Part shown: positions 11,901 through 27,210 of the stretch, piece after piece | Position numbering within the stretch: position 1 is the first letter of the stretch | Layout: every line of letters begins with the position of its first letter | From: Cyanophora paradoxa CCMP329 | Taxonomy: Eukaryota > Plantae > Glaucophyta | Direction of reading: 5' to 3' | Length of the DNA: 64,000 nucleotides | Assembly: GCA_004431415.1 (NCBI GenBank) | Contig: QPMI01000525.1 | Location: 1 to 64,000, forward strand | Notes under the pieces: generated by a model | Seen by the model: the letters and a program-made list of their open reading frames with translations, nothing else | What the model was told of the DNA's origin: nothing | Databases searched by the model: none | Position numbers and translations under genes: made by a program

Positions 11901-14900
11901 AAGCGCACCTCCTCTTCCATGAGGATGTTCTGCTTGAGGACGGGGGTCCCGTCTAGCACCTGCGCCCGGGGAGCGAACTCGAAATCAAACTTTGAGAGCA
12001 CTTATCAGAAAAGCTCCTTCGGGGGGCGCGCTCGCCCGCCTTAACGCCGCCGGACTCGGCATAGTCGATTATCGCTTGGAAGCTTACGAACGCTCAAAGC
12101 TTGAATTCGAGCTCCCGAGAAACGCGTTACCCGCCTAATGTGCTGGAAAGCTTGAAAGCTTGATCATGAAAGCTTAACGCTTGAATTTAAGCTGCTAAGA
12201 AACGCATTCGATGCCTATCTCTGGCTTTGTTTCGCGCGCGGACCTTTATGCCGCCCGACTCGGCACAGTCTCTTATAAATATATATATATATAACGCTTA
12301 AAAGAACGCTTTAAAAAAGCATAAATTGTAGCTTCGTTTTGCGCATGCGGACCTTGATGCCGCCCGACTCGGCGTAGTCGATGTCCGCGATGCGCTCCAG
12401 GGTGTTCCCGAGGATCGAGCCCGCCCCGCCCGACGAGACCTGGGGGGGGGGGGGGGGGGGGGGGGGTTGGGTAGGGGGCGGGGTGAGATGGAGGAGGGGA
12501 AGACAGAAGGCGGGGGAAGGGTGGGGGGAGGGGGGGGGAGGAGACTAGTCCGATGTGTTGGGGGGGCGGGGGGGGGGGGGGGGGGGGGGAATCGATGGAG
12601 GAGGGAGGCGAAGACTAGCCCGATGTTCCTCACGCTTCACGTAGATTGGGTGGGTGGGTGTGGGGTTGGCGGGGGGTGGGGAGGGGAGGGGGCAGGGGGC
12701 AAGGAACGCGCCTGGATGCCCCTGGCCTGGTCGTAGACGTGGTTGCCCTTCACGAGCGGCTGCGCCCCGTTGGCCACCGCGACGCCCGCCAGCCCGTTCT
12801 TGAAGATCTGCAGATCAAATCGAAGGCAAAATCAGCAAGGGACGCCCGGTTTTTAAGCTAAAATAAGCTAAGGACCTCGCAGGACTCGACGCGGCCCTTG
12901 CAGGCGTCGAGGAGGACGCCGGCGCCCTTGCCGCCGTGGACGCGGCAGCCCCGCACGAGGGGGTCCGCCCCCGCCGAGGCCTGCGTGCGTGTATACGCAT
13001 AGTTAATAGTATTCGATAGCAGCCAATAGTATAATAGCTATTAATAGTAGTTGATAGTATATTATTTAGTCGATAGTGCGTTGGGGTGTCCTTAGAGCTC
13101 GACAGCTACAAGGAAAGTAGTCTTAGTTCGAGCTGGGCCTGTCTGGTCTCTCTGACCTCGACCCCCGCCTCGCGGCTGCCCTCGATGTCGCACGCGTCGA
13201 GCGTGCCCTTCGCCCCCTTCGAGAAGACCACGCCCGTCTGCACGATAGGAGGAATTGATCGAAGAAAGAAAGAAAAAGACGGGAGAGAAGAGGGGCGAGC
13301 GAGCCTGTCCGCAGTTCTTGATGGAGCAGGCATGAAGCATTGGCTCCGTCCCTTCGCCAGAAACCTCCACGCCGCGCCTGCGCGCGCGTGTATAACAAAT
13401 TATAAGATCGCATCAATTAAGGCTTAAGCTAAGTTTGCGTAAAAACGGACCCGGCGCTCTCCACGAGGAGTCCGTCCAGAGCCGCTCGGCTCCCGCCGGC
13501 GATCCGGACCGCGGCGCCGGCGGCGGCGCCCGTGGCGCGCACGGCGAAGCCGCGGAGCGAGGGCGCGGCGGCGCCCTCGCAGACCAGCGGCGGGGCCGAG
13601 CCGCACTGCACGACGGCGTCCCGCGTGCCGGCCACGTGGACGTCCTTGTCCAGGGTACAGGATTCCTCGTAGGTCCCGGGGGCCAGGAAGACGCTCTGCC
13701 CGGGCGACGCCTGTGCGATCGCCTGCGCAGAGTTTAGTAGACCGCGGCCGCGGGCCCGGCGCGAGGCCGGGCCTGGGGGTACAGGTAGCGATATAGGGTC
13801 GAACGGACCTGGGAGAGGGTCTTCGAGATCCCGGGGAGTCCGCGAAAGTCCACCAAGATGCCTGCAGCTAAAAGAGTTAAAAAGGAAAGAATTAAGGGAT
13901 CGGCCGGAGCTAAAGAGTTTATAGATTAGAGCCTAGGCCTACGACATCATCTATCTCTAATTGACCGTATACGTATACGTAAGAAAGTGAAACCATCTAA
14001 GATGCCTGCAGGCACGCGATTCGTCATGACTCAGTGATCAGTAACATTGCAGTCACGTCGAGATCTAGAGCAATCCGCGCTCGAAGTTCGCGGGGAATTC
14101 GCACCGCCGCGGGCGAGGCACTGCCTGAGGAGCGGCCGCGCGCGCCGCCGCGCCGCCTCGAGCTCCCGCTCCCGCTCCGCGTGGGCCTTCACCTGCGAGC
14201 GAAGCAAGCGGCCGGTCGGACCCTCCCTCCCTCCCTCCTTTTAGATTCTTCAACTGAAGTTCCTCTGTTTCTCTATTATATTAGCGCTCTTGTTTAGCGC
14301 TCTTTGGCTGAATTTACATATTCTAAGGCTCCCTCCGCTCCTTCAACTGAAGCTCCTCTGTAGCTTGCGTATATATAGCTTTTAAGCTTCTTATAGAACT
14401 CCATCGCCAATAGCTTGCGCGCGCGCGCTCTCTCTCTCTCTGTCTCGCCCACACACACCTTCCCCGCCACCTCCGCCCCGGCGCCCTCGAATTCCTCCGC
14501 CTCCGCCGCGCTGACCACCGCCGCTCTGCGCGCGATCGCGAACTCAATTCTTCGCTTCGGATTCGATTTTTCGAATTCGTTTCGCGTACCCCGGGGAGAC
14601 GGCCTTGGCGAGGGCGGTGGCGTCCCTCGTCAGGGCGATCGCGAACCGGGGGCGCCAGGGGTACGCCTTCGCGAAGCGCGGCTCCTCTGCGCATACGAAC
14701 AGAGCCCCGTTAGATTCTAGTACCCCTTGCGGCCGACACGGCCGGCTCCGCGTCCCGGAGTCCGGTCTCACCCTCGCAGTGGCACTCGGCGTAGGATTTG
14801 GAGACGAGGGCGACCAGCGTCCGAGACTCCTTCAGCGCCAGCTGCCCCCGGTGGGGTAAGGAGCGGGGGGGGGGGAGAGGAGCGGGGGGGGGGGGGGGGG

Positions 14901-17900
14901 GGGGTTCGGCGCGCGCACCGCCACCTCGTCGGCCCAGATCTCGCCCGTCTCGGTGCCCTTGTCGTACCTGCGGCCGGCCCGTTCATTTCCGAGCTTGGGA
15001 GGGTAGGGCGAGGGGTGGGAGTGGGTAGGAGGAGGAGGGTGGGGAGGAGGAGGAGGGTGGGGGTGGGAGTGGGGGGGTGGAGGCGGGGGCGGGTTGAGGG
15101 GGGGGAAGGGGAGGGGGGCGAAGCGAAGGAGGAGGAGGGAGGGGAGGGGGCAGGTGGAGCCCCAGTGGGGCGGGCGGGCGGCGAACCACACGGCGAGGCC
15201 GGAGGCTTCGAGGCGGGCGGCGAGGCGCGCAGCCAGCTCCACGTCCTGCACCCCAAACAGTTGAGCGCGAGGGCTTCTTATTATAAAGCCCTATAATAAA
15301 ATCAAGGACTCTTGAATATAAGATTACAGGCCGACCTTGTGCGTGCTCGAGATGAAGGCCTCGTAGCGGTAGGGCGCGCTCCCCCCCAGCAGCGCCATCG
15401 GCGAGTCTGCCGGAGAGTTCGGGATCGCAGAAATGTTCGGGATCGAAGAAGAGTGTTCGGGATCGAAGAAAGATGTTCGGGATCGAAGAATAGAAGCACC
15501 TGGGGCGGCGCCATCGCCGATGCGGTCGTCGTGGAGGGAGTCCGCCCCCGAGAAGCCGTGCGGCTGGCCCTGGCCTTCGTTCGTGCCCGCGCCCGCCTCG
15601 GCCGATGCTGCGGGCCCCGATCAGCTATTAATAGCTATAGGCGACGGGGTACGGCGCACGGAGGCCGCTGCCGGCGGTGGCTGCGGCGGCGGCAGCGGCG
15701 TCGGCGCGCCCCGCGCGCCTGCCGGCCTCGTACGCCTGCCGCGCCCCTGGCCCTCGACGTCAGCGACCCTTCTCAAAGCTCCTAAGCTTATCTCCGCTAT
15801 TCCGATTCTAGAACTTCTTGGTTCGAGTTTCTTCGTTCCCAAGCGCACCTCGAGTTCTATATGCTATACACCTTATGCTCTTCTCAAAGCCTAAAGGGCG
15901 ATAGGCGATAGGCCTTCTCTCAAAGCTCCTAAGCTAGGCTTCGCGGGTCCGATTCTAGATTAGATCTAGATCTAGCTCTAAATGAGGTCAGATTCAGATT
16001 CAAGATCAGATCCTTAAAGCTTGCATAAAACAGCTTCTCGGAGATGGCTCAGTTGACACAATTGTATAACGCTTTATTCAGCTCGACTTCAGTCGTTGAG
16101 CTGAGCCAACGTCGCTGCGAACGCGTTTCCAGGCGCACGGACCTCGGCCCAGCGCTTTTCGGAGATGGCTTTAAGACTTTAAGATCTTAGACTCGTGACT
16201 CGTTGAGCTAGGCCAAGGTCGCTGGGCTAGGCTAGGCTAGGCTTCGCGCGGACCTCGACGCGGCGCTTCTCGGAGATGTCGAGGCGCGCCTCGAAGTCCC
16301 CCCTGAGGCGCTCCTCCTGCGGAGGAGGAGGAGGCCGCAGGCAGTCAGAGGAGGCGCGAAGGTCGGACAAGGGGAGGGTGGGTGGGGGGCGTCAGGGCCC
16401 GGCGGCCTCGGAAGACCTAGCGAGCGCTATCTCGGGCTTCTCTGGCTCTCTAGCGTTATCTAGATTGCTGCAGGCTGAAGCTAAGCCGAAAACGGATGTA
16501 CCAAAAAGGTCGCACCTCGGCGTGCTTGATCGTGAGATCCTGGACTTGCTTCCTCAGGTCCGCCAGGATCCGCCGCCACGCCTGCCCGGCCCGAGCGGGA
16601 GCGCGCGCGCGGCGCGAAGGTGAGCGAGCGGCTGTGATCGATATCGATCGAGTTTGGAGCATTCCTAGAGAGCGGTGCGGGGCGCGGCGGCGCCTGAAGT
16701 GGGCACCCCGGCCCAGGCGCCGGCTCAAAGGAGCCTTCGTATGGGGACGTACAGGCAAGGAAGAGGGAGCCGGAGGAAGGGAGGGGGGGCGGAGGGGTAG
16801 GGTGATGAAGGGGTACGGAGAAGGCGCGGGTGGTGGGAGGTGGGAAGGGGCGTGGGCGTCGGGCGGGAGGGAGGGAAGGCGGGGGAGTAGGGCAGACGAA
16901 GAGGTGGGGGGTACGGAGCTTAGAAAGGGGAAGGGGTGTTGGGTGTGTGTGTGTGTGCGGAGGAGAAGGTGTCGGAGGGGGTTAGGAGGGAGGTGGTACG
17001 CTCGAGGGGTGACTGGGGGCGGGGAGGGGGAGGGAGGGGGGGAGGGAGGGGGGCCGGGTAGAGAGAATAGGCAGAAGAAGGGGTGGGGTAGGGGTGGGGA
17101 TGGGGTTTGGGGGGCGGGGTGGGAGGGGAGGACCGGGGGGGGGGGGGGGGCAAGCGGGGGGGGAGCGGGGGGGCGGCGGGGGGATGTGGGGGGGAGCAGG
17201 GGGGAGCGGGGGGCGGGGGGGAAGGGGGCGGGGCGTCCCAGGCGCCGGCTGAAAGGATCATTCGTATGGAAGACGTCGGGAGAGGGTGTTGGGGGGTGAG
17301 AGGGGGCGGGGCGGGGAAGGAGTCGGGGGGAGCGGGGGGGAGGGGGGGGAGGGGGGGGGTAACGGTACCTCCTCGGAAATGCGGACGACGTTGGAGGAGG
17401 CGGTACTCTCTTCGTGCGCCGCCTCCGCCCGCCGCCGCGCCTCCTCCGCCCGCCGCTCCGCCTGCCCGCACGCGCCCGGGCCGCGCCCCGTCAGCCCAGC
17501 CAGAGAGCGAGTCCGCCTTAGCCGGCTCATTGGTCGCTAATTTCCTAAGTCCGGCTCGAAGCCCGGGTACAGGGCGCGGCGGACCTCCTCGGCGCGGCGG
17601 TCGGCGTCGCCCTCGGCCTCGAGGGCGCGCCGCTCGGCCTCGAGCGCCGCGTCCCGCCCCAGCCGCTCCGCATCCGCCTGCGGGGGGGGGAGGCGAGGGT
17701 CAGGGCGGCTCAGGGCAGCAAGCCGGGCAAAGGGGCGAGGAGCTGATTAGGGAGAGGGAGGTCTTCAGCAAGGCGTCCCCGGCTGTATGGCGCGAGGCGT
17801 CTCTTGCCAGACTGGTCCAGACTGGGGGGGGGGGGGGGGTGGGGGGGGGGGAATGGGAGGGGGTACAGGGATCGCACCACGGCGTCCTCGGCGCGGCGTT

Positions 17901-18373
17901 TGGCCTCTTCGGCGGCGTCCTGCGCCAGGCGCTCCGCCTGCCCGCCCGCGCGCCCCGTGAGGAGATCGAATCTCAGATCGAATTCGAATTCGGGATCAAA
18001 TGCGCACCATCTCGGCGCGCATCTCGGCCTCCTCGGCCCTGCGCCGCTCGCGCTCCAGCAGCGCCTTCACCGCCTCCATCTGCGCCGCGTGCTTCGCATG
18101 CGCCCGCGCCAGCGCCTCTGCGGCCGCGGCCGCGCCCTCCGATCCCGAGTCCGAGTCCACCTCTTTCGCCCGCTCCTCGGGGGCGGCCGGCGCCAGGCCG
18201 AGCTTCTCGGGCATAGATGCGATCGTGAAGCGACGGGACCCGTTCCGCGGCCTCACGGGGCTGCCGTCCCTGGCCGGCGGCTGCGGCTGCCCGTCCCCGA
18301 GCTCGAACGACCGCTGCCGCGCATCCAGCAGCCGATTCCGCGTCCTACTGTTCACGCCCGACGACGAGCTCAT
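8932..18373 (-). CDS. Coiled-coil - TIR domain - tandem right-handed parallel beta-helix (pectin-lyase-like) protein; roughly 30 exons
   Basis: Phase-compatible splicing joins E/A/R-rich coiled-coil exons to YEAFISSTHK|DVELAARLAARLEASGLAVW|YDKGTETGEIWADEVA|LALKESRTLVALVSKSYAECHCE|EEPRFAKAYPWRPRFAIAL (TIR_2 pattern, ~15370-14590). Two beta-helix units follow, each with an N-cap (AIAQASPGQSVFLAPGTYEE; VATAVQYASAGQ|TIYVAPGRY) and repeats such as IFKNGLAGVAVANGAQPLVKGNHVYD. TGA at 8934-8932. Some internal exons are uncertain. Confidence 0.8.
15416..15490. repeat. Intronic minisatellite, ~19-bp unit gttcgggatcgaagaa(n) x4
   Basis: Directly visible tandem copies inside the intron preceding the first TIR exon. 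Confidence 0.85.
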
Positions 18374-21300
18374 TTGACAGGCTCAGAGGATAGTAGCTGC
18401 AGGCTGGCTGCGTTGTAGCTACAACGTTAACACCGATGTCTTGTCGGGCCTGCAGCTGAGCCTGTTCAGCCCCGGAAACCCTGCAGGCGGCGTTTCGTTA
18501 ACAGAAGAAGCTGAAAACAAGCCTCACGCGGCTTCCCGATTGCTGAGCGAGCCGATCGCATGCGCACCGGTTGTCGATTCAAGATAAGGCAACGCTGCGG
18601 CGAGGCGCGCTTAGAAGAAGCGCCCAGATCAGAGCAAACACGCCAGGCGCTCACTGGGACGCACGATCGCTGTCCCCAAGGCACACCTGCTGTTAGCTAG
18701 GCCTAGGACTGGCGTACGCGTCGTGTGTTCGGGCGCCTGCCAGCCCACTTGGTGGCCGCGGGCTGAGCAATCTAACGAACAGCACGATGTGCTGCAGGCT
18801 ACGATGACGTCGACGCTAGCGCACGGCTCTGATCGACGCAACCGCTCGGGGGGGAAGCTGGAGGGGGGTAGTCGGACGGGCCCGGCAATTAAGCTCGGCG
18901 CGGCGCCGCCGGCCCGGCCCCGCGCGCGCTGCGCAGCTGCCGCCTCCCCGAGCGCCCCGTTTCGACGTCGACGCGCTCTTCTAGAACTGGCCATGGGTCT
19001 CGCATTGTCGTGCGCGCGCGATGACGTCGACGCGGTCGACGTCAGCTAGCGCTGGCGGTTTTGAGGGAGGGGGGGGGGGAGGGGGGGGGGAAGTTGGTGA
19101 AAATGAAGGACTTGAGAAGCATTTTCACTTCGAATTCTTCGGGCGGGGACCGTTCGGGCTGTTCAGTGCCGGCGCGTAGAAGGCTAGAAGCACGACGCAT
19201 GCCGCAGTGCGCGTCGTCGCGCGCGTAGCATGAGCAGCAGCAGATGGGCAACAGCTGCGGTCATGGCCACGCAAGCGCTGGAGCTCGGCCGCGGCGTGGC
19301 TCCCTTGGATCCGTCGCTGTGGGCTCGGCGCCTGCATCCAACGGCGATCTCATCCTCGCAAAGCCGGCTTCGATCGGATCGACATACGCAAAGTCAGCAG
19401 ATGAACCCCGGCGCAGAGGCGCAATCGATTCCGATGCGCACATCGACCCGCATGCATTTGCGAGCGCCCCGATCCAGCACGCCAGCAGCGTGCGGAGTTT
19501 GAAGCAACTGAAGGCGTCCCTGTCGGGGTCGCTGAAGGAGCGGTTCTTCCGTCACAGCGCCAGCAGCAGGGGTGGGAGCTCGAGCATGCAGCTCTCAATC
19601 TCCGGCTCAGCGGCGCTCAGTCTGTCTCCCAAGCGGTCGTTGCCGCCGCCTCCTCGAGCTCCTTCTCCCCGTTTCGAAGAGTTCGAGCTCGACGTCGAAG
19701 ATTCGTCGCTGATAGCTAGCGCTGATCATGATCATGCATATGCGAATTTGACTGGAGCGGAGCGCGGCGGGCCCGAGGCGCCGGCGGACGCGGATGGATC
19801 CGGAGGCCCAAGCATCGAGGTGAGCCTTCCGCAGCCCTCCAGCTTGCGTACGTACGCCCCAGCCCGCTCGGGCTCACGCGCCGCGCGCAGGAGCTGCTGG
19901 ATTCGATGCGGCCGGCAGTGCACGTCTGCGCGGCCCCCGAGGACGTCCCCGAGGCCGGCGCCGTCCTCGCCGAGCTGCAAGACACGTACGGCTTCCGCCT
20001 CTGGTTCGCTCTCGCCGGCCGCCGGTTCCTTACCATGGCCAGCTCGAGCGCGGCTGATCATGTCGGGCTATCCGGTGGCGTGCAGCGGCGCGGCGGGGCC
20101 CTGCGCCGCACCGGACGCGTCGGACTGCCCCGCGCGCGCGTTCCTGCTTGTCGCGCGCCCGGCGACGGCGGCGGACGCCGCGTGCATCGAGTCGCTCGAC
20201 GCGGCGGTGGACGACGGGCGCTGCGTGCGGCCCGTCTGCTTCGAGGAGCAGCGCGCGGCCGCCGCGGCCCTTCCGAAGACATTCGCCCGCCGCCTCGCGC
20301 AGTTCGAGGTGCCTTAGCCGCGATTTTAATTTGGCTTCGTTCTTCCTTTGAGCCCTGGGCGCCTCGGCAGTGGACGGCCCTGCCGCCGGGCGCCTCGCCG
20401 GCCGATCGCGACGACGCGATCGAATCGCTCGCCGCCTCTCTCCTGCGCGACGCGCGGCGGCCCCCGGGCGCCCCCGCCCCCGCCGGCCCCGACCTTCACG
20501 ACCTGCCGAAGGTGCGCACGTACTCCCTTTGAACTCGTACCCCCCGCGCTAACTTTCAACGCGCCTCGTGCACGTGGTCAGGACGTAGAAGGGGATCCCG
20601 CCCTTGCGGCCATTGTCCGGGTGCGCCTTTTCTCCTCCACGCTCAGCCGAGACCCCCGCCTTGGCTCGAGCTCGAACCTGCCCGGAGCCCCTAGCCTTCT
20701 GATCATGACTTCGAGGGCTTCGCAGTTTGCGCGACGGGAGCTGGCGGTCCCGCAGCCGCCCGAGCCCTACGTGCCCCCGCGGGCCGCGCGCCCCGCCTCC
20801 AAGGTGATTCGATCTGATTTGATCATGATTCCTTGCTCTGCCTGGAAAGAGATTTGATCCCGATCAAAAGGTGGCGACGGACCTTCGGGCCGAGGTCAAC
20901 GCTTTCCTCGCGGTGCGCGCGATTTATTAATTCGATCTCGGAGGGGCGGCCACGCAAATCAAAATTAAATCAAAGTTGGCCCCGTTGAAATCGGAGGGTA
21001 CAAGCACAGCTGGGCCCCCTAAACTCTCTTCCGGATCGCAATCGCGAGCTGGCCACGGGCTGAAACTCGCCCGCAGAAGCTCGAGCTCGCGAAAGGGCCG
21101 GACGGGCGCGCCCCGCACCACAAGGTCCTGCTCCTCGTCGGCGAATCGGGGTACGGCTTCTGTCGCTCGAATTCGATCCGAAATTTAAATTTGATCCCGA
21201 TTTGATCCAGGGCGTCCAAGTCGACGTTCCTCCGGCGGCTTCACCGCGAATCGTGCCGCGAGTGGGCGCAGCCGGCGGACGGCGGGGCGGGCCCCTTGAT

Positions 21301-24300
21301 CCCCCCGACGGTCCTCGTACCCCTCGACGAGGTCGCGGACGACCCGTCGGGGCCCCTCGCCGCCCTCCGGCGGCTCGCGGCGTGCAGGCTCGGCGTCCCG
21401 GCTGCCGCCCTCCCCGCCATCCGGGACCGGTACGCAATTTTCTCCTTCGGATCCTCGCGATCGTTCGTTCTCGCTCGCGATCGTTGATTTCTTTGCTTTC
21501 TCGCAGCTTCGGGCTGGTCCTGCTGCTGGACGGGTACGACGAGGTCGCGGGCGAGGAGGGGCGGATCGTGGCCGGGCCCATCGGGGACCCGAACCTGTGG
21601 CGGGGCGGGGACCTGGGCGCCTGGGCCAGCGGCGCGGTCGTCGCGTGCGGCTCGGAGCTCCGCTCGCGCCTCTCCCTCGCCCAGACCGAGGTGCGCATGC
21701 TTCGCGATCGTTTTGTCACTAAGCGGCCCTCTCAAGAAATTCCACGCGAGTCGTAAAACGCGCTCCGGGCCCGCCCCGTCTGACCTTGTCTGTACTCTGC
21801 AGGCGATCTTCGCCCCCGCGGACCGGGAGGGGGGCGCCGCCCGCCCCAACGGCCTCCTCCAGCTCACCGTCCGCCCCCTCACCAAGCCCGACGTGCGCCG
21901 GCGCCCAAAGCTTAAGCGGCCGACCTTCTTATCTTAAATTCGATTCGCGCTGCAACGAGCCCTTATCTGTGTACCCCGCCTCCTTCAGATCGACGAGTAC
22001 CTGGGGGAGTACGCGGAGCTGCACGAGGGGACCGACTACGCAATCCCCGCCGCCGAGTACGAAGCCCAGGTCCGTTGGCTTGTTTAAATTGACACCTTCT
22101 ATCGCTTGTTCTTTCTTTCTTTCTTTCTTTGAAGCCCAGGTCCGTATACGTATACGTGTACGTTAACATGTACATGGTAGATGGATGATCCGGGCCGACC
22201 TTATTCTCTAGATATAGATCTTTCTAGGTCCTTTGAATCTTTCTTTTGCCGCCTCCAGATCACTTTTTCCCTACTGGGCTTTCCGCATTTCGACCGTTGG
22301 ACGCGCTATCGACGGGCCCCAACGGCCGCACGGACTGTCTTTCTTTCTATGGATTCCCCTGCCGCCATTACTTCTCTTCACTTCGCCACCGCCACCGCCT
22401 CCTCCTCTTTCCTTTGATTTTACTTTCCCATTCCGGATCCGCTTCTTCTTCTCTGCCGCCACCTGCAGCTGACGCGCGGCAGCTGCGGCGGCGGACGGGG
22501 ACGGCGTCGCTGGCGCAGAACGGCCTCTGCCTCGCCATGGTCGCCCAGGTCCTTCCCGTTCTCTCCACCCGGTGCGCCAAGCTAAGCCTTACGGCTCGAA
22601 TGTTAAGCCTTTTCCCTTAAGCTTCATGATCATGATCATGATCAATTGCAAGCCTTCATCGCGTCCTTTTTCGAGTACATTCCAACTTTGTGTCTCAATC
22701 GTAATCCAACGCATTCTGCCGGCAGCGTGGGCGTGCGGGGCCTCTACAGACTCTTCCTCGAGGCCATCATTCGCCGCGAGGTGCGAATCCAAGCTTAAGA
22801 AAACTGGAACACAGCGCCGCGAACGTTGCCACTGATCATGACCAATCCGCTCACCCGTGCGCAGATCGCCCGCGCCGGCGGCGGCAGCGGCGACCGGGCG
22901 CGCCTGCTGCCCCCCTGCCTGGCCCTCTGCCGCCGCCTCGCGGCCGCGATGCTCCGCGACGGCCGCCGCCGCGTCTCGGTGCCCCTGGACCCGACCCGGG
23001 TCATCCCGGAGGAGGAGGAGGCGGGCGGAGATCCAGACGAGGCGGGGCGGGCGCTGTGCGGGGGGGCGGGCCCCGCGCTGCGCGAGCTCTGCCCGCTGCG
23101 CCGCTGGCGGGCCCGCGGGCGCCTGGTCTTTGCCTTCTCGCACCCTTCTTTTCAGGACTTCTTCGCCTCCGAGGCCCTCCTCCAGTCGGTGCGCGCGTCA
23201 CAAACGTACACGTGCGAATCCCTTTTGTGCTTACTTGGATTTGGCTCTTCTCGCAGCTCGTGCCCGACGGCAACCCTAGGCCTGAGGGCACGGGTGCGGA
23301 GGAACGGGGCGCGTACATCTCAGCTCGGTCCGCCCCCTATGCCTTTTGCTTCCCGCCCTTCTCCAGGGCTTAAGGGGGCACCCCCGGCCCTTCGCGCAGC
23401 CTCTGGCGGGGCGGCTCGGCGCTCGTGCGGTTCCTCGCGGACGCCATCCAGACAGAGGGCCGCCCCGGCGTCGCCTCGGTCCGTCCATCCGCGCTTTAAA
23501 TCTACCGCTGCGCTTCGAAGTCGAAGACAGCGTCTGACGTGCACACGCCTCGCCAGTCTCTGTTCGCGCTGGTGATGGCGAGCCGCGAGGCGGGCGGCTC
23601 GGCCGTGGCGGCCGCCAACGCGGCGACGGTCCTCGCGGCCGCCGGCGTGTCGCTGGCGGGGCGGGCCCTGCGGGGCGTGCGCATCGCCGGCGCATGCCTC
23701 CGCCGCCTGGAGGCGGCGGGGGCCGACCTGCAGGGGGCCGACCTGACCGGATGCGACCTGACGGGCGCCAACCTCGCCGGGGCCGACATCCGCGGGGCCA
23801 AGCTGGAGGACATAAACTACGGGATTACGCCCCCGTTTCAAGTCGCCTGCCCGCCAAACGCCCTCTCCGCGTCGGCGAACGGGCGGCGCCTGGCGGCCAC
23901 GTGCCGCGACCGGCGGATCCGCGTCCTGGATGGCGTTACGGGGGCAAAGCTCACGGCGTTGGGCGGGCCCGACTCGGGATGGAAGGCGCTGGGGCCAGTC
24001 GCCCTCTCGTCGGTGCGGCGACGCCGTCATTTCCTTAAGCGTGTACGTGTTCAGCGGTGCCTGACGACGCGGGGCCTCAGGACGGGCTCCGCCTCGCCTC
24101 GGCCGTGGTGGCGGCCGACGGCTCCGTCTCGGCGAGGATCTGGGACGCCCAGACGGGGGCCGACGTCGCCGTCCTCGACCGCGACCCGACGGGCACCGAG
24201 GGGCCCGCCGCCTGCGTCGCCCTCAGCGAGGTGACAGGCTTCGAAAATGGATTCGCGTGAAACCGCGCTAATTTTGGGGCAGGACGGGTCGCGGGTCATG

Positions 24301-25322
24301 GTGGGGACGAGCGACGGAGGCGTAAGACTGCACGACGGGCGCACGGGCCGGCTGCTCCGCCGGCTCGCCGGCCACGCCAAGGCTGTCACTGCCGTCTCCC
24401 TCTCGGCGGTGCGCAAGCTTGAGAGGGACCCTGCAAGACGTGCGGGGTTTTCCGCCCCGTTCGACTGTGGCACCGCAGAGCGGCAACCGCGCGCTCTCTG
24501 CGTCCGAAGACGGCACAGCGATCGTGTGGGACGACTGCCTCGGCGTCGAGATCGCGCGGCTCTCGGGCCACACGCGCGGCATATGCTGCGCGGTGCTCTC
24601 CGCGGACGGCCGCCGCGCGGCGACGTGCGACGGGCCCGCCGTGCGCGTCTTCTCCGCGACGACCGGCGCGCTGCTCGTGACGCTCCCGCGGGCCAACGCC
24701 CTCGAGTGCGTCACGGCGCTCGCCATCTCTTCGGTGCGAATTCCAGGCTTTCTTTCAATGCGGCGCTGATTTCGAGGTTTCAAATTCGCAACGCTGTTCG
24801 AAGGGCGGTTCGCGGCTCGCGACGGGATCCAGCGACGGACGGTTGGTCCTTTGGGACGCGGAGGTGCGATCCGATCCGATCCGATCCGATCTGAGCTCAG
24901 CCGACTCTGCTTGTCGCAGGCCGGCTCGCCGCTTGCCCAGCAGCGGGTGGGGCGGGACCAGATCCTATCTGTGGCACTCTCCGCCGCCGGCGACCGCCTC
25001 TTCTCCACGATGCGTACGCTATCGTTGAGCGGGCGCATCCACGTCTGGGACGCCAACTCACCCGCCGAAGTGCGACCATAGCCAAATGCCGCGCGCCTAC
25101 CTCCATGCCGCCAACGAGGCCTATGTTTGAGATTGGGTCTGCAGGCGGGCGAGTCTGGCGAGGCGCACGCCCCCGGCCACTCGCTCGACGTCCAGTGTGT
25201 CGCCGTCTCGTCGGTGCGGCCCTCTTCCTCATCCAATGCCTTCAATTCAAATGTCTTCTGATTTCAAAGCAGGACGGGGCGCGCGTGGTCTCTGGCGGAC
25301 ACGACAAGTGCCTGCGCGTCTT
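17360..25322. repeat. Right arm of the inverted segmental duplication
   Basis: Reverse complement of 1-7840 with substitutions and intron indels. Confidence 0.95.
18374..19243. promoter_or_regulatory. Putative bidirectional promoter between the divergent TIR/beta-helix and NLR-like genes (duplicate at 5890-6725)
   Basis: 870 bp between two divergent ATGs; partly conserved in the duplicated arm. No specific motifs identified. Confidence 0.55.
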
Positions 25323-27210
25323 CGACGGCAATGGCGGCGCGGAGCTCAGGCGCATCCAGGTGCGCTCGCCATTAATTATATAATACTCGACGCTTTTACC
25401 GGCGTCGACGGGATTCACGCGCGCTCTGAGCTTGGAGATTATATGTCGCAGGTCGGAGTCGGCTCGGGCTCCGTCTGGTCCGTCTCGCTCTCGCCGGTGC
25501 GCAGTTTTTCGGAAATGAAGAAAGGAATGAATCCCTGACCTGCTCGCGTCTGACGTCCGTCGCGGCGCAGTGCGGGCGGTGGGCGGTCGTTGCTGCATGG
25601 GACTTCGTCGCTCGCATCTTCGACACCTTGACCGGCGTGCAAGTGCGCTGCGTGCACCCCGCCTCGCAGAAAGAAAGTTTATGTAAGTCTATATCTGAAT
25701 GATCGCGCTCGCAGGTCGGGCGTCTGAAGGGGCACGAGAAGGAGGTCCTCGCCGCTGCCTACTTTCCGGTTCGCATTTTCAGGAAGAAGCTTTGAACGGC
25801 TAGCTTTTACTTCAATGCGTGGTAATTGTAAGAAACCATAGTAGTTATAATATAAGCGTCCCTGTTTGTTCCTCCACGCTCGTCTAACGAATCTCCGCTG
25901 CTCAGGACGGGAATCGGGTGGTGACGGGGAGCCACGACCGGACGGTCCGCATCTGGGACGCGTCGAGGGGCGAGGAGCTGCGGAGGATTGCCGAGCACAG
26001 CGATACCGTCACCTCCGTCGCCGTCTCCCCGGTCCGCGTGTTTGGCTCGCTTCTCAGCTCCAGCTGAAGCTTTAACTGCCTAGGATGGGGAATGGCTCGT
26101 CTCTGGCGGCCACGACGGATGCGCGAGGATCTTCGACGTCGCCACGGGGCGCCAGGTAGGCAGACAGTTTTCAGTGTGTGTAGATGCTTATTTGTTATGA
26201 GCTAAGATGCGGGTTTTGCGATCGCAGACACATTTCCTCTCCACCCACAAAGCGTGGGTCGAATCCGTCGCGGTCTCACCCGTGCGCCCTCTGCTTTAGA
26301 CCAGAGTTCGATCAATTCGCGCGTTTGACGCGCCGCGCTTCGATCTCAGGACGGGAAGCGCGTCGCGGCGAGCTGCCGCGACGGAGGGATCCGAGTCTGG
26401 AGCGTCAACAGCGGCACCGAGCTTCTCCACGTGCGCTCGCTCGAAATTACGTGTGATTAAACCTCGCTCTGATTTGCGCGTTCTCGCAGATGCGGGGGCA
26501 CGTCGGGCCCGTGTGGTCCGTCGCCTTCTCGCCGGACGGCGCGTGGCTGGCCTCTGCCGGCGAGGACGGCACCGTCCGCGTGTGGGACGGCGCCACGGGC
26601 TCCGAGCTGCAGCGGCTCGCCGGCCACGCCGGCGCCGTCCGATCCGTCGCCGTCTCCTCCGTGCGTCGGCGTTTCGGCGCCTCTGACGTCGACCACGACC
26701 GAATTCGAATGCTCGACAGACGGACGCCGGCGCCCGCATCGTTTCGGGCGGCGCGGACGCCTCCGTTCGCGTGTGGGCGGCGCCGCCGCCGCTGCAGCCT
26801 CCGACGCGGGCGGGTGCAGAGGCGGGACCTGCACATATTTGCCCCCCGGTATGCTATACTTTCTTTCCGCACTTCAATCTGATCTGATCTGATCTGACCT
26901 CTTCCTCCTTTTCCCAGCGCTTCCTGTGCCTGCGGCGCATCCAGCGAACAACCAAGCTCGAGATGTCCAAAGTTAAGGTGCGATTAATTGGTGGCCCTCG
27001 AATTCAACTTGCAGCCTTTCCCTCCCAAGCTTTTATATATAGATATCAATAGACCTTGCATGGCGATCGCATAAGCTTCAGCTTGAGGGCGATTCTTCTG
27101 CCGGGCCGTGGATTGACCGCTGCTCGCGGCAGATGGATGCACCGAGCTCGAGCTTGAGCTCGAGCTCGAGCCCGCCGAATTCGAAGCCTCATGCACATAT
27201 GCCAGTCTAA
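19244..27210 (+). CDS. NLR-like protein, copy B: MGNSCG - degenerate TIR - NACHT (STAND NTPase) - pentapeptide repeat - 14 WD40
   Basis: ATG 19244; intron 19820-19890; TIR-like ~19906-20450; P-loop VLLLVGESG|ASKSTFL across intron 21151-21210; Walker B LVLLLDGYDEV ~21514-21546; FSHPSFQDFFASE ~23135-23173; pentapeptides ~23610-23810; 14 WD40 blades ~23830-26780 (e.g. RGHVGPVWSVAFSPDGAWLASAGEDGTVRVWD). The last exon and stop (27208-27210) are tentative. Confidence 0.88.

Follow-up and report, generated by a model that had tools for sequence, protein, structure and literature searches.

A probable TIR/beta-helix gene in the glaucophyte Cyanophora paradoxa, one more member of a recurrent and uncharacterised family

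The stretch of DNA analysed here (the window) comprises 64,000 nucleotides from the glaucophyte Cyanophora paradoxa CCMP329 (assembly GCA_004431415.1, contig QPMI01000525.1, positions 1 to 64,000) and consists of GC-rich eukaryotic DNA. On its minus strand there is what is likely to be a real, weakly expressed, intron-rich nuclear gene that encodes a TIR domain, a linker and then a right-handed parallel beta-helix of the NosD/CASH type. The gene is apparently missing from the published protein set, and no model of the locus was found among 1.84 billion representatives. The closest protein relatives found are all from C. paradoxa (EukProt set EP00741). A first-pass annotation had proposed that a TIR-like domain, split over five small exons of compatible phase, is fused to two beta-helices in an unusual architecture; its peptide is the exact product of five small minus-strand exons at 14590-15406.

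The evidence comes from splice borders and reading frame, from homology to three annotated C. paradoxa proteins, P0009 (tig00020801_g13970.t1), P0010 (tig00000157_g9712.t1) and P0039 (tig00000042_g15404.t1), all in EukProt, and from four public sequencing runs aligned to 12400-18399. Runs X1 and X7 are probably RNA; X2 is a DNA run. The exons of the TIR domain, the linker and the first beta-helix are as follows, in the order in which they are read.

15406-15336, minus strand: TIR exon 1, beta-A strand with the F-I-S motif; in-frame ATG at 15398
15245-15187, minus strand: TIR exon 2, alpha-A helix and start of beta-B (hhalign, per-exon shuffle)
14967-14919, minus strand: TIR exon 3, end of beta-B and loop region (phase-compatible, split Trp codon with exon 2)
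14841-14772, minus strand: TIR exon 4, beta-C strand and start of alpha-C (PF01582, shuffle, hhalign)
14686-14590, minus strand: TIR exon 5, rest of alpha-C and a putative beta-D (spliced X1 contig over 14590-14681)
14525-14459, minus strand: linker exon E6 (spliced X1 contig, joint 14590/14525 with GT..AG)
14192-14105, minus strand: linker exon E7, a charged helix (spliced X1 and X7 contigs)
13861-13809, minus strand: exon E8, lead-in strand of beta-helix 1 (spliced X1 and X7 contigs)
13722-13451, minus strand: exon E9, N-terminal cap and first turns (acceptor 13722 confirmed by X1 and X7)
13377-13305, minus strand: exon E10, turn of beta-helix 1 (tblastn with P0009, frame); a predicted GC-AG intron comes next
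13237-13157, minus strand: exon E11, turn of beta-helix 1 (X1 contig over 13156-13221, donor confirmed; tblastn)
12980-12876, minus strand: exon E12, turns of beta-helix 1 (both borders confirmed by X1; Pfam Beta_helix at an expectation value (E) of 0.02-0.18)
12807-12712, minus strand: exon E13, turns of beta-helix 1 (acceptor 12807 confirmed by X1; Pfam Beta_helix E 0.13; tblastn); a predicted GC-AG intron follows
12439-12353, minus strand: exon E14, turns of beta-helix 1 (60% identity to residues 529-558 of P0010)
11959-11909, minus strand: exon E15, last turn of beta-helix 1 (frame, borders; by-eye comparison with the C-terminus of P0010)

All five TIR exons are bordered by AG...GT. A Trp codon is split across TIR exons 2 and 3 and a Glu codon across TIR exons 4 and 5, and the reading frame continues open from these exons through the next four. 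In the predicted frame the GC content at the third codon position (GC3) is 0.89-1.00 per TIR exon, with 0.43-0.66 at the second position; the introns between the TIR exons are without such codon-position periodicity. The intron ahead of TIR exon 1 (15415-15493) is filled by four tandem copies of a unit of about 20 nucleotides.

Are the TIR and the beta-helix read together? A 456-nucleotide X1 contig covers 14681-14590, 14525-14460, 14193-14104, 13860-13808 and 13721-13573, and in this way crosses four introns, from the last TIR exon through three linker exons into the first beta-helix exon, E9. Its joints (14590|14525, 14460|14193, 14104|13860 and 13808|13721) are all GT..AG on the minus strand, and the donor of exon 5 at 14590 is confirmed by it. 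An X7 contig covers 14193-14104, 13860-13808 and a piece from 13721, and a second X1 contig joins 13221-13156, 12979-12876 and 12807 onward; in the DNA run X2, an unspliced contig extends over 13552-14857. Contig depth is about 5, a low level of expression. The last TIR exon, the three linker exons and the first beta-helix exon thus share a transcript, in the frame that the TIR exons set, and this is the same order of TIR and beta-helix as in the family described below, seen here for the last TIR exon. TIR exons 1-4 would belong to the same gene, to judge from splice sites, phase, coding signature and homology. Of the proposed fusion to two beta-helices, the part that concerns the first is upheld by the contig that runs from exon 5 to E9; that of the second would follow from the open 1016-residue model presented below and from codon signature.

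Some peculiarities of the alignments may be recorded. Within E6 (14460-14525) the X1 contig is 6 nucleotides longer than the window, in frame, which points to a GCGGAG-type repeat that is either polymorphic in length or differently assembled. Homopolymer or low-complexity tracts, C-rich on the minus strand and G-rich on the plus strand, are present in introns at 14858-14916, 12440-12600 and 16600-17370, and attract false short alignments of unrelated RNA contigs. Three long-range joints (15706|17573, 16338|17300 and 13530|15683) were rejected as false alignments, with sides of 20-21 letters in C-rich low-complexity DNA and non-canonical ends.

Is the product of the five exons a TIR domain? Comparisons were run exon by exon, each piece of 16-31 residues being searched singly. 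Exon 4 has one Pfam match among 24,736 models, and this is the TIR family PF01582 (E 0.13, profile positions 52-69), with a score of 12.5 bits against a cut-off of 21.3. The other TIR exons have no Pfam match, PADLOC and NCBIfam gave no TIR match for single exons or open stretches, and a PDB search with exon 4 found nothing. Profile searches over every open stretch of the window gave no significant match for any single exon, either with the three-paralog profile or with one from 120 bacterial TIR_2 proteins, which are all at least 74% alike and so make a narrow profile. With tblastn, two Rhodococcus plasmid TIR proteins gave only short, non-significant matches in the window.

The order of the exons on TIR profiles is more informative. 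On an alignment of the TIRs of P0009, P0010 and P0039, hhalign places exon 1 on columns 4-16 (P 0.04), exon 2 on columns 23-35 (P 0.00047, 77% identity over 13 residues) and exon 4 on columns 60-70 (P 0.12), and these three fall in the correct order. A collinear score was also calculated, whereby the best ungapped segment of each exon is taken and the exons are constrained to the profile order. With a mixed profile of 25 bacterial TIR_2 sequences and the three paralogs, the five exons score 59.2 bits. Internally shuffled exons score 38.5 +/- 3.1 bits and random pieces of other open stretches in the window 35.5 +/- 3.0 bits, and none of 2000 of either kind reaches the observed value (z-scores of 6.8-8.0). 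Two further profiles give z-scores of 6.1 and 4.9, with none of 2000 shuffles at the observed score for each. On the mixed profile exon 1 lies at columns 3-13, exon 2 at 21-37 and exon 4 at 58-72; per-exon shuffle p-values are 0.001 for exon 2 and 0.0005 for exon 4. Exon 3 has a p-value of 0.002 against this profile, at a placement that is probably wrong, and exon 5 alone has no significant profile match by hhalign or the shuffle test. A collinear core of beta-A (F-I/L-S), alpha-A, beta-B (V-W-x-D) and beta-C is therefore recognizable. Because the collinear score lies beyond all controls and the exons are placed in order, sequence comparison gives good support to a TIR identity over the first two thirds (beta-A to beta-C) of the domain. 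The earlier proposal of a TIR-like domain over five phase-compatible exons is borne out by the AG/GT borders, the frame and the collinear score.

The identity of the beta-helix is apparent from its first large exon. E9 matches the N-terminal part of the NosD family TIGR04247 (E 2e-6), and a search with it found 102 proteins among the 1.84 billion representatives, with a best E of 5e-18 and 45-51% identity to Cyanophora beta-helix proteins. These relatives carry PF13229 at E 1e-39 to 1e-54, together with NosD matches; in the window gene itself E12 and E13 match PF13229 at E 0.02-0.18. An AlphaFold model of P0009 shows a beta-helix at a predicted local distance difference test (pLDDT) score above 95. 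An N-terminal cap and repeated turns, with matches to the family profiles, are thus found, as in a right-handed parallel beta-helix. P0010 ends at a position that matches E15. The last 20 or so bases of E14 and its donor occur three times, at 12026-12066, 12230-12270 and 12339-12379; the two copies of the real E14 end that lie within the following intron are decayed (85% and 73%), as if left over from small tandem duplications or pseudo-exon ends.

How far does the gene extend on either side? A chain of 33 exons, built from splice sites, phases and paralog homology, runs from an ATG at 18373 to a TGA at 8934-8932 (3051 nucleotides, 1016 codons) with no internal stop. Its introns are GT-AG except for three that are predicted to be GC-AG; these three of the 32 predicted introns need such borders for frame and repeat pattern (donors 13304, 12711 and 10899, minus strand), and these donors lie outside the cover of RNA contigs. 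The regions of the model protein and the remaining predicted exons are listed below.

Residues 1-308: no known domain, largely Ala/Glu/Arg-rich helix-like sequence
Residues 318-423: TIR
Residues 476-748: beta-helix 1
Residues 776-1016: beta-helix 2, a clear internal duplicate of module 1 including the lead-in strand
18373-18008, minus strand: exon U1, predicted first coding exon (ATG 18373-18371, 122 residues, GT donor, GC3 0.92)
17937-17878, minus strand: exon U2, predicted, Ala/Glu/Arg-rich and helical (AG/GT, phase 0, GC3 0.90)
17677-17585, minus strand: exon U3, predicted, Ala/Glu/Arg-rich and helical (AG/GT, phase 0, GC3 0.97)
17461-17369, minus strand: exon U4, predicted, Ala/Glu/Arg-rich and helical (AG/GT, phase 0, GC3 0.90)
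16581-16516, minus strand: exon U5, predicted, helical, heptad-like by eye (AG/GT, phase 0, GC3 0.91)
16316-16254, minus strand: exon U6, predicted, helical (AG/GT, phase 0, GC3 1.00)
15735-15660, minus strand: exon U7, Ala-rich linker, the weakest of the model (AG/GT, open frame)
15607-15500, minus strand: exon U8, predicted linker before the TIR (AG/GT; GC by codon position 0.81/0.60/0.91)
11699-11617, minus strand: exon E16, charged linker and lead-in of beta-helix 2 (in-frame join to 11269)
11269-11209, minus strand: beta-helix 2 exon H1 (frame; tblastn with P0009)
10994-10900, minus strand: beta-helix 2 exon H2, N-terminal cap (48% identity to residues 261-293 of P0009); a predicted GC-AG intron comes next
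10766-10721, minus strand: beta-helix 2 exon H3 (frame; parallel to module 1 by eye)
10640-10576, minus strand: beta-helix 2 exon H4 (tblastn with P0039, 45% identity; frame)
10454-10341, minus strand: beta-helix 2 exon H5 (tblastn with P0039; frame)
10157-10079, minus strand: beta-helix 2 exon H6 (tblastn with P0039; frame)
9762-9667, minus strand: beta-helix 2 exon H7 (38-47% identity to P0009, P0010 and P0039)
9439-9368, minus strand: beta-helix 2 exon H8 (frame, borders)
9027-8932, minus strand: beta-helix 2 exon H9, the last (TGA at 8934-8932; weak tblastn match)

The second beta-helix is marked by collinear tblastn matches of P0009, P0010 and P0039 at 10997-10899, 10691-10578, 10456-10334, 10162-10052 and 9762-9658, and is an independent second copy of the module. 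The join of E16 to 11269 recreates the lead-in motif of module 1 and of P0009. On the upstream side, U8 carries no in-frame ATG and therefore needs an upstream coding exon. U1 has no Pfam match, the only one of U4 is a weak long-helix family, and in U7 GC is high at all three codon positions, which leaves an ambiguous coding signature. By the predicted chain, U1 would be part of the TIR/beta-helix gene. The protein would most probably have 1016 residues and consist of an Ala/Glu/Arg-rich helical N-terminus, the TIR, beta-helix 1, a charged linker and beta-helix 2. Taken singly, the upstream start and the second beta-helix are each fairly likely to be part of the same protein.

An unspliced X1 contig over 18277-18399, which continues upstream, covers the region of the predicted start codon; it may represent the 5' end of the TIR/beta-helix gene or that of its divergent neighbour. 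In the DNA run X2 there is an A>G difference at 18364 in about half of the depth. The neighbour, head-to-head on the plus strand at 19229-27000, is intron-rich and has pentapeptide repeats at about 23713-23811 (Pfam E 1e-11) and several WD40 repeats at 24326-24766 and 26457-26879 (E 6e-17). In its 5' part Pfam finds no TIR, and there is a weak, non-significant TIR-profile match at 19873-20001.

P0009, P0010 and P0039 are annotated as proteins with an N-terminal TIR_2 and the same beta-helix, and the order of TIR, linker and NosD/CASH-type beta-helix is that of the window gene. E9 is 43-45% identical to the three and the later beta-helix exons are collinear with them. In the TIR, 10 of 12 residues of the alpha-A helix are identical to those of P0009, whereas outside alpha-A the domain is much diverged from all three. 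Of the solved TIR domains, those of SARM1 and TIR-1 are matched best by a profile of the three paralog TIRs (E 1e-5), and the catalytic Glu falls in alignment; a word search with the P0009 TIR returned P0009 itself only. The paralogs have one beta-helix and an N-terminal TIR, whereas the window gene is predicted to have two and some 300 extra residues at the N-terminus; P0010 also has a WW domain. Elsewhere in C. paradoxa the same module is joined to a Sina-type RING and zinc finger, a protein kinase, a class-3 lipase and alpha/beta hydrolase, or a WW domain (P0002, P0012, P0014, P0015 and P0010). The window gene is one of a family, expanded in this lineage, that combines one beta-helix module with interchangeable heads (TIR, Sina-type RING, kinase, lipase). 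Contig tig00000157 holds four family members.

The combination is not confined to the alga. The ESM Atlas cluster nearest to P0009 contains 107 proteins of about 521 residues, of which 99% carry Beta_helix, 98% TIR_2 and 97% NosD; 90% are bacterial, most commonly from Actinomycetota. The match, made with P0009 and not with the window gene, is 0.94 in language-model features and extends in shape over 315 residues at a root mean square deviation of 2.0. The cluster has the same two Pfam families in one protein, and differs in being bacterial, intron-less and of a single beta-helix. A scan of species genomes for the bacterial TIR/beta-helix gene found nine loci that match the beta-helix part only, the three that were checked being without a TIR, and a plasmid search for it found beta-helix-only proteins of Streptomyces. 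The supposition that the architecture is unusual does not hold, as TIR_2 occurs with the same beta-helix in three annotated Cyanophora proteins and in the 107-member, mostly bacterial cluster. No paper on Cyanophora TIR proteins or on the TIR/beta-helix family was found in the literature, and a survey of TIR architectures does not mention the beta-helix. The window gene is thus one more member of an uncharacterised, recurrent TIR/beta-helix family. Particular to it are the predicted tandem beta-helix, the long helical N-terminus and a TIR far diverged from the SARM1-like one of the paralogs.

What weighs against an intact gene of this kind? The assignment of X1 and X7 as probable RNA runs is a tool's guess, backed only by the spliced form of the contigs, and none of the transcripts from the four runs on 12400-18399 extends over TIR exons 1-4, the upstream exons or beta-helix 2. 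Taken one at a time, the exons all stay below the curated family thresholds, hhalign gives exons 3 and 5 no placement on the TIR profile, and the TIR, at about 105 residues, is short, with a C-terminal third unlike that of the paralogs. One might ask whether the five exons encode some other small alpha/beta segment that resembles a TIR by chance, as the blank results from PADLOC and NCBIfam and the non-significant single-exon matches to local hidden Markov models would allow. This is highly improbable in view of a collinear score beyond all 4000 mixed-profile controls and all 2000 shuffles for each of two other profiles, of TIR being the only Pfam family of exon 4, and of three paralogs in which a TIR precedes the same beta-helix at the corresponding place. 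A TIR that is catalytically dead or decaying, either kept as an interaction module only or part of a gene on its way to a pseudogene, is a more tangible alternative, if still an unlikely one. Three consecutive Glu span the exon 4/5 junction and the register of the catalytic Glu is ambiguous by 1-3 residues: the catalytic column falls on Arg with the loop length of the bacterial profile, ungapped, on Pro with the P0009 spacing, and on Glu only if the loop is 1-2 residues shorter. There is no Trp before the acidic run, a Pro follows the three Glu, the C-terminal part is divergent, and expression is low (contig depth of about 5). This alternative is opposed by a frame that is intact over 33 exons with full coding signature, by correctly spliced transcripts and by the presence of three Glu within two residues of the expected position.

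The other alternatives concern the borders of the gene. It might start at the in-frame ATG at 15398 with the TIR at the N-terminus, U1-U6 then making up a coiled-coil gene of their own, with its end shortly past 16254. A shorter protein is indeed possible, as in P0009, P0010 and P0039 the TIR lies at the very N-terminus (within 50 residues); moreover, U6 if unspliced runs into a stop after 8 codons, an AATAAA is present near 16080, and no RNA joins U6 to U7 (16254 to 15735). The short form nevertheless seems rather improbable, as U8 (15500-15607) has a clear coding signature, is in frame with the TIR across a canonical intron and lacks an ATG, and from 18373 onward the entire chain stays open, with canonical sites. 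At the other end, a TIR/beta-helix-1 protein might end past 11909 by intron read-through, with beta-helix 2 (11754 to 8932) as a separate beta-helix-only gene. E15 unspliced would indeed reach a stop after 10 codons, its end matches the terminus of P0010, an in-frame ATG lies upstream of E16, and beta-helix-only Cyanophora paralogs of 163-332 residues exist. Such a division is possible yet doubtful: the GT donor of E15 is strong and of the same type as elsewhere in the gene, E16 connects in frame with both E15 and H1 (11909|11699 and 11617|11269) and recreates the module's conserved lead-in, and the paralogs P0008 and P0015 have several beta-helix stretches. The single gene of 33 exons is preferred here.

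What might the product of this gene do? It is probably cytosolic, because no signal peptide or membrane helix was seen by eye in the exons, including U1 and the start at ATG 15398. By analogy with the CASH domain in FBXO11, binding or sensing would fall to the beta-helix. The first-pass annotation had envisaged a TIR enzyme putatively oligomerised by a coiled coil and gated by a glycan- or protein-binding beta-helix. A ligand on the beta-helices could cluster the TIR domains, perhaps aided by the helical N-terminus, and the clustered TIR might cleave NAD+ as an effector, or nucleate a signalling assembly as an adaptor if the catalytic Glu is lost. The most likely role would be that of a cytosolic beta-helix sensor coupled to a TIR effector. 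The modular swapping of heads in C. paradoxa is in keeping with a sensor whose effectors can be exchanged.

In bacterial, plant and animal immunity alike, the TIR domain is the part that executes or makes the signal, and it is the joined sensor that differs. To our knowledge there is no studied example of a NosD/CASH beta-helix as the sensor next to a TIR. Could the beta-helix be a true ligand sensor that takes the place of LRR or WD40 repeats? If so, TIR/beta-helix proteins might constitute an undescribed class of cytosolic pattern receptors common to Actinomycetota and an alga, with the window gene as a two-sensor, coiled-coil-assembled, NAD+-cleaving version; this full scheme is speculative and on present evidence improbable. 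Nonetheless, a family with this build, found in bacteria and multiplied with swapped heads in a glaucophyte, is a candidate new receptor class that is open to test, and an early-branching alga may here have retained a bacterial immune module. The window gene adds one member to this family, perhaps a two-sensor one with a long helical N-terminus.

Among known systems, the pectin and pectate lyases have only the fold class in common with the window gene. The right-handed parallel beta-helix fold is also shared with the mannuronan C5-epimerases AlgG/AlgE, the polysaccharide lyases and NosD. Paralog P0009 matches AlgG by sequence at E 1.6e-6, and its model matches alginate epimerases and polysaccharide lyases by Foldseek at E 1e-5 and resembles phage tailspikes in the PDB. 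These are, however, secreted or periplasmic enzymes or chaperones, and the window protein seems to be without a signal peptide. With the NAD+ hydrolase SARM1/TIR-1 the TIR of the window gene shares the pattern of beta-A, alpha-A, beta-B and beta-C, the match figure given above being that of the paralogs' TIR; the ARM and SAM domains of SARM1/TIR-1 are not in the window gene. FBXO11/FBXO10 clusters are among the nearest shapes to the paralog beta-helix, a comparison by paralog shape with a template modelling (TM) score by target of only 0.31-0.35. Their head is an F-box and not a TIR, but here, too, a cytosolic eukaryotic binding module of the NosD/Beta_helix (CASH) type stands beside a signalling head, as appears to be the case in the Cyanophora gene.

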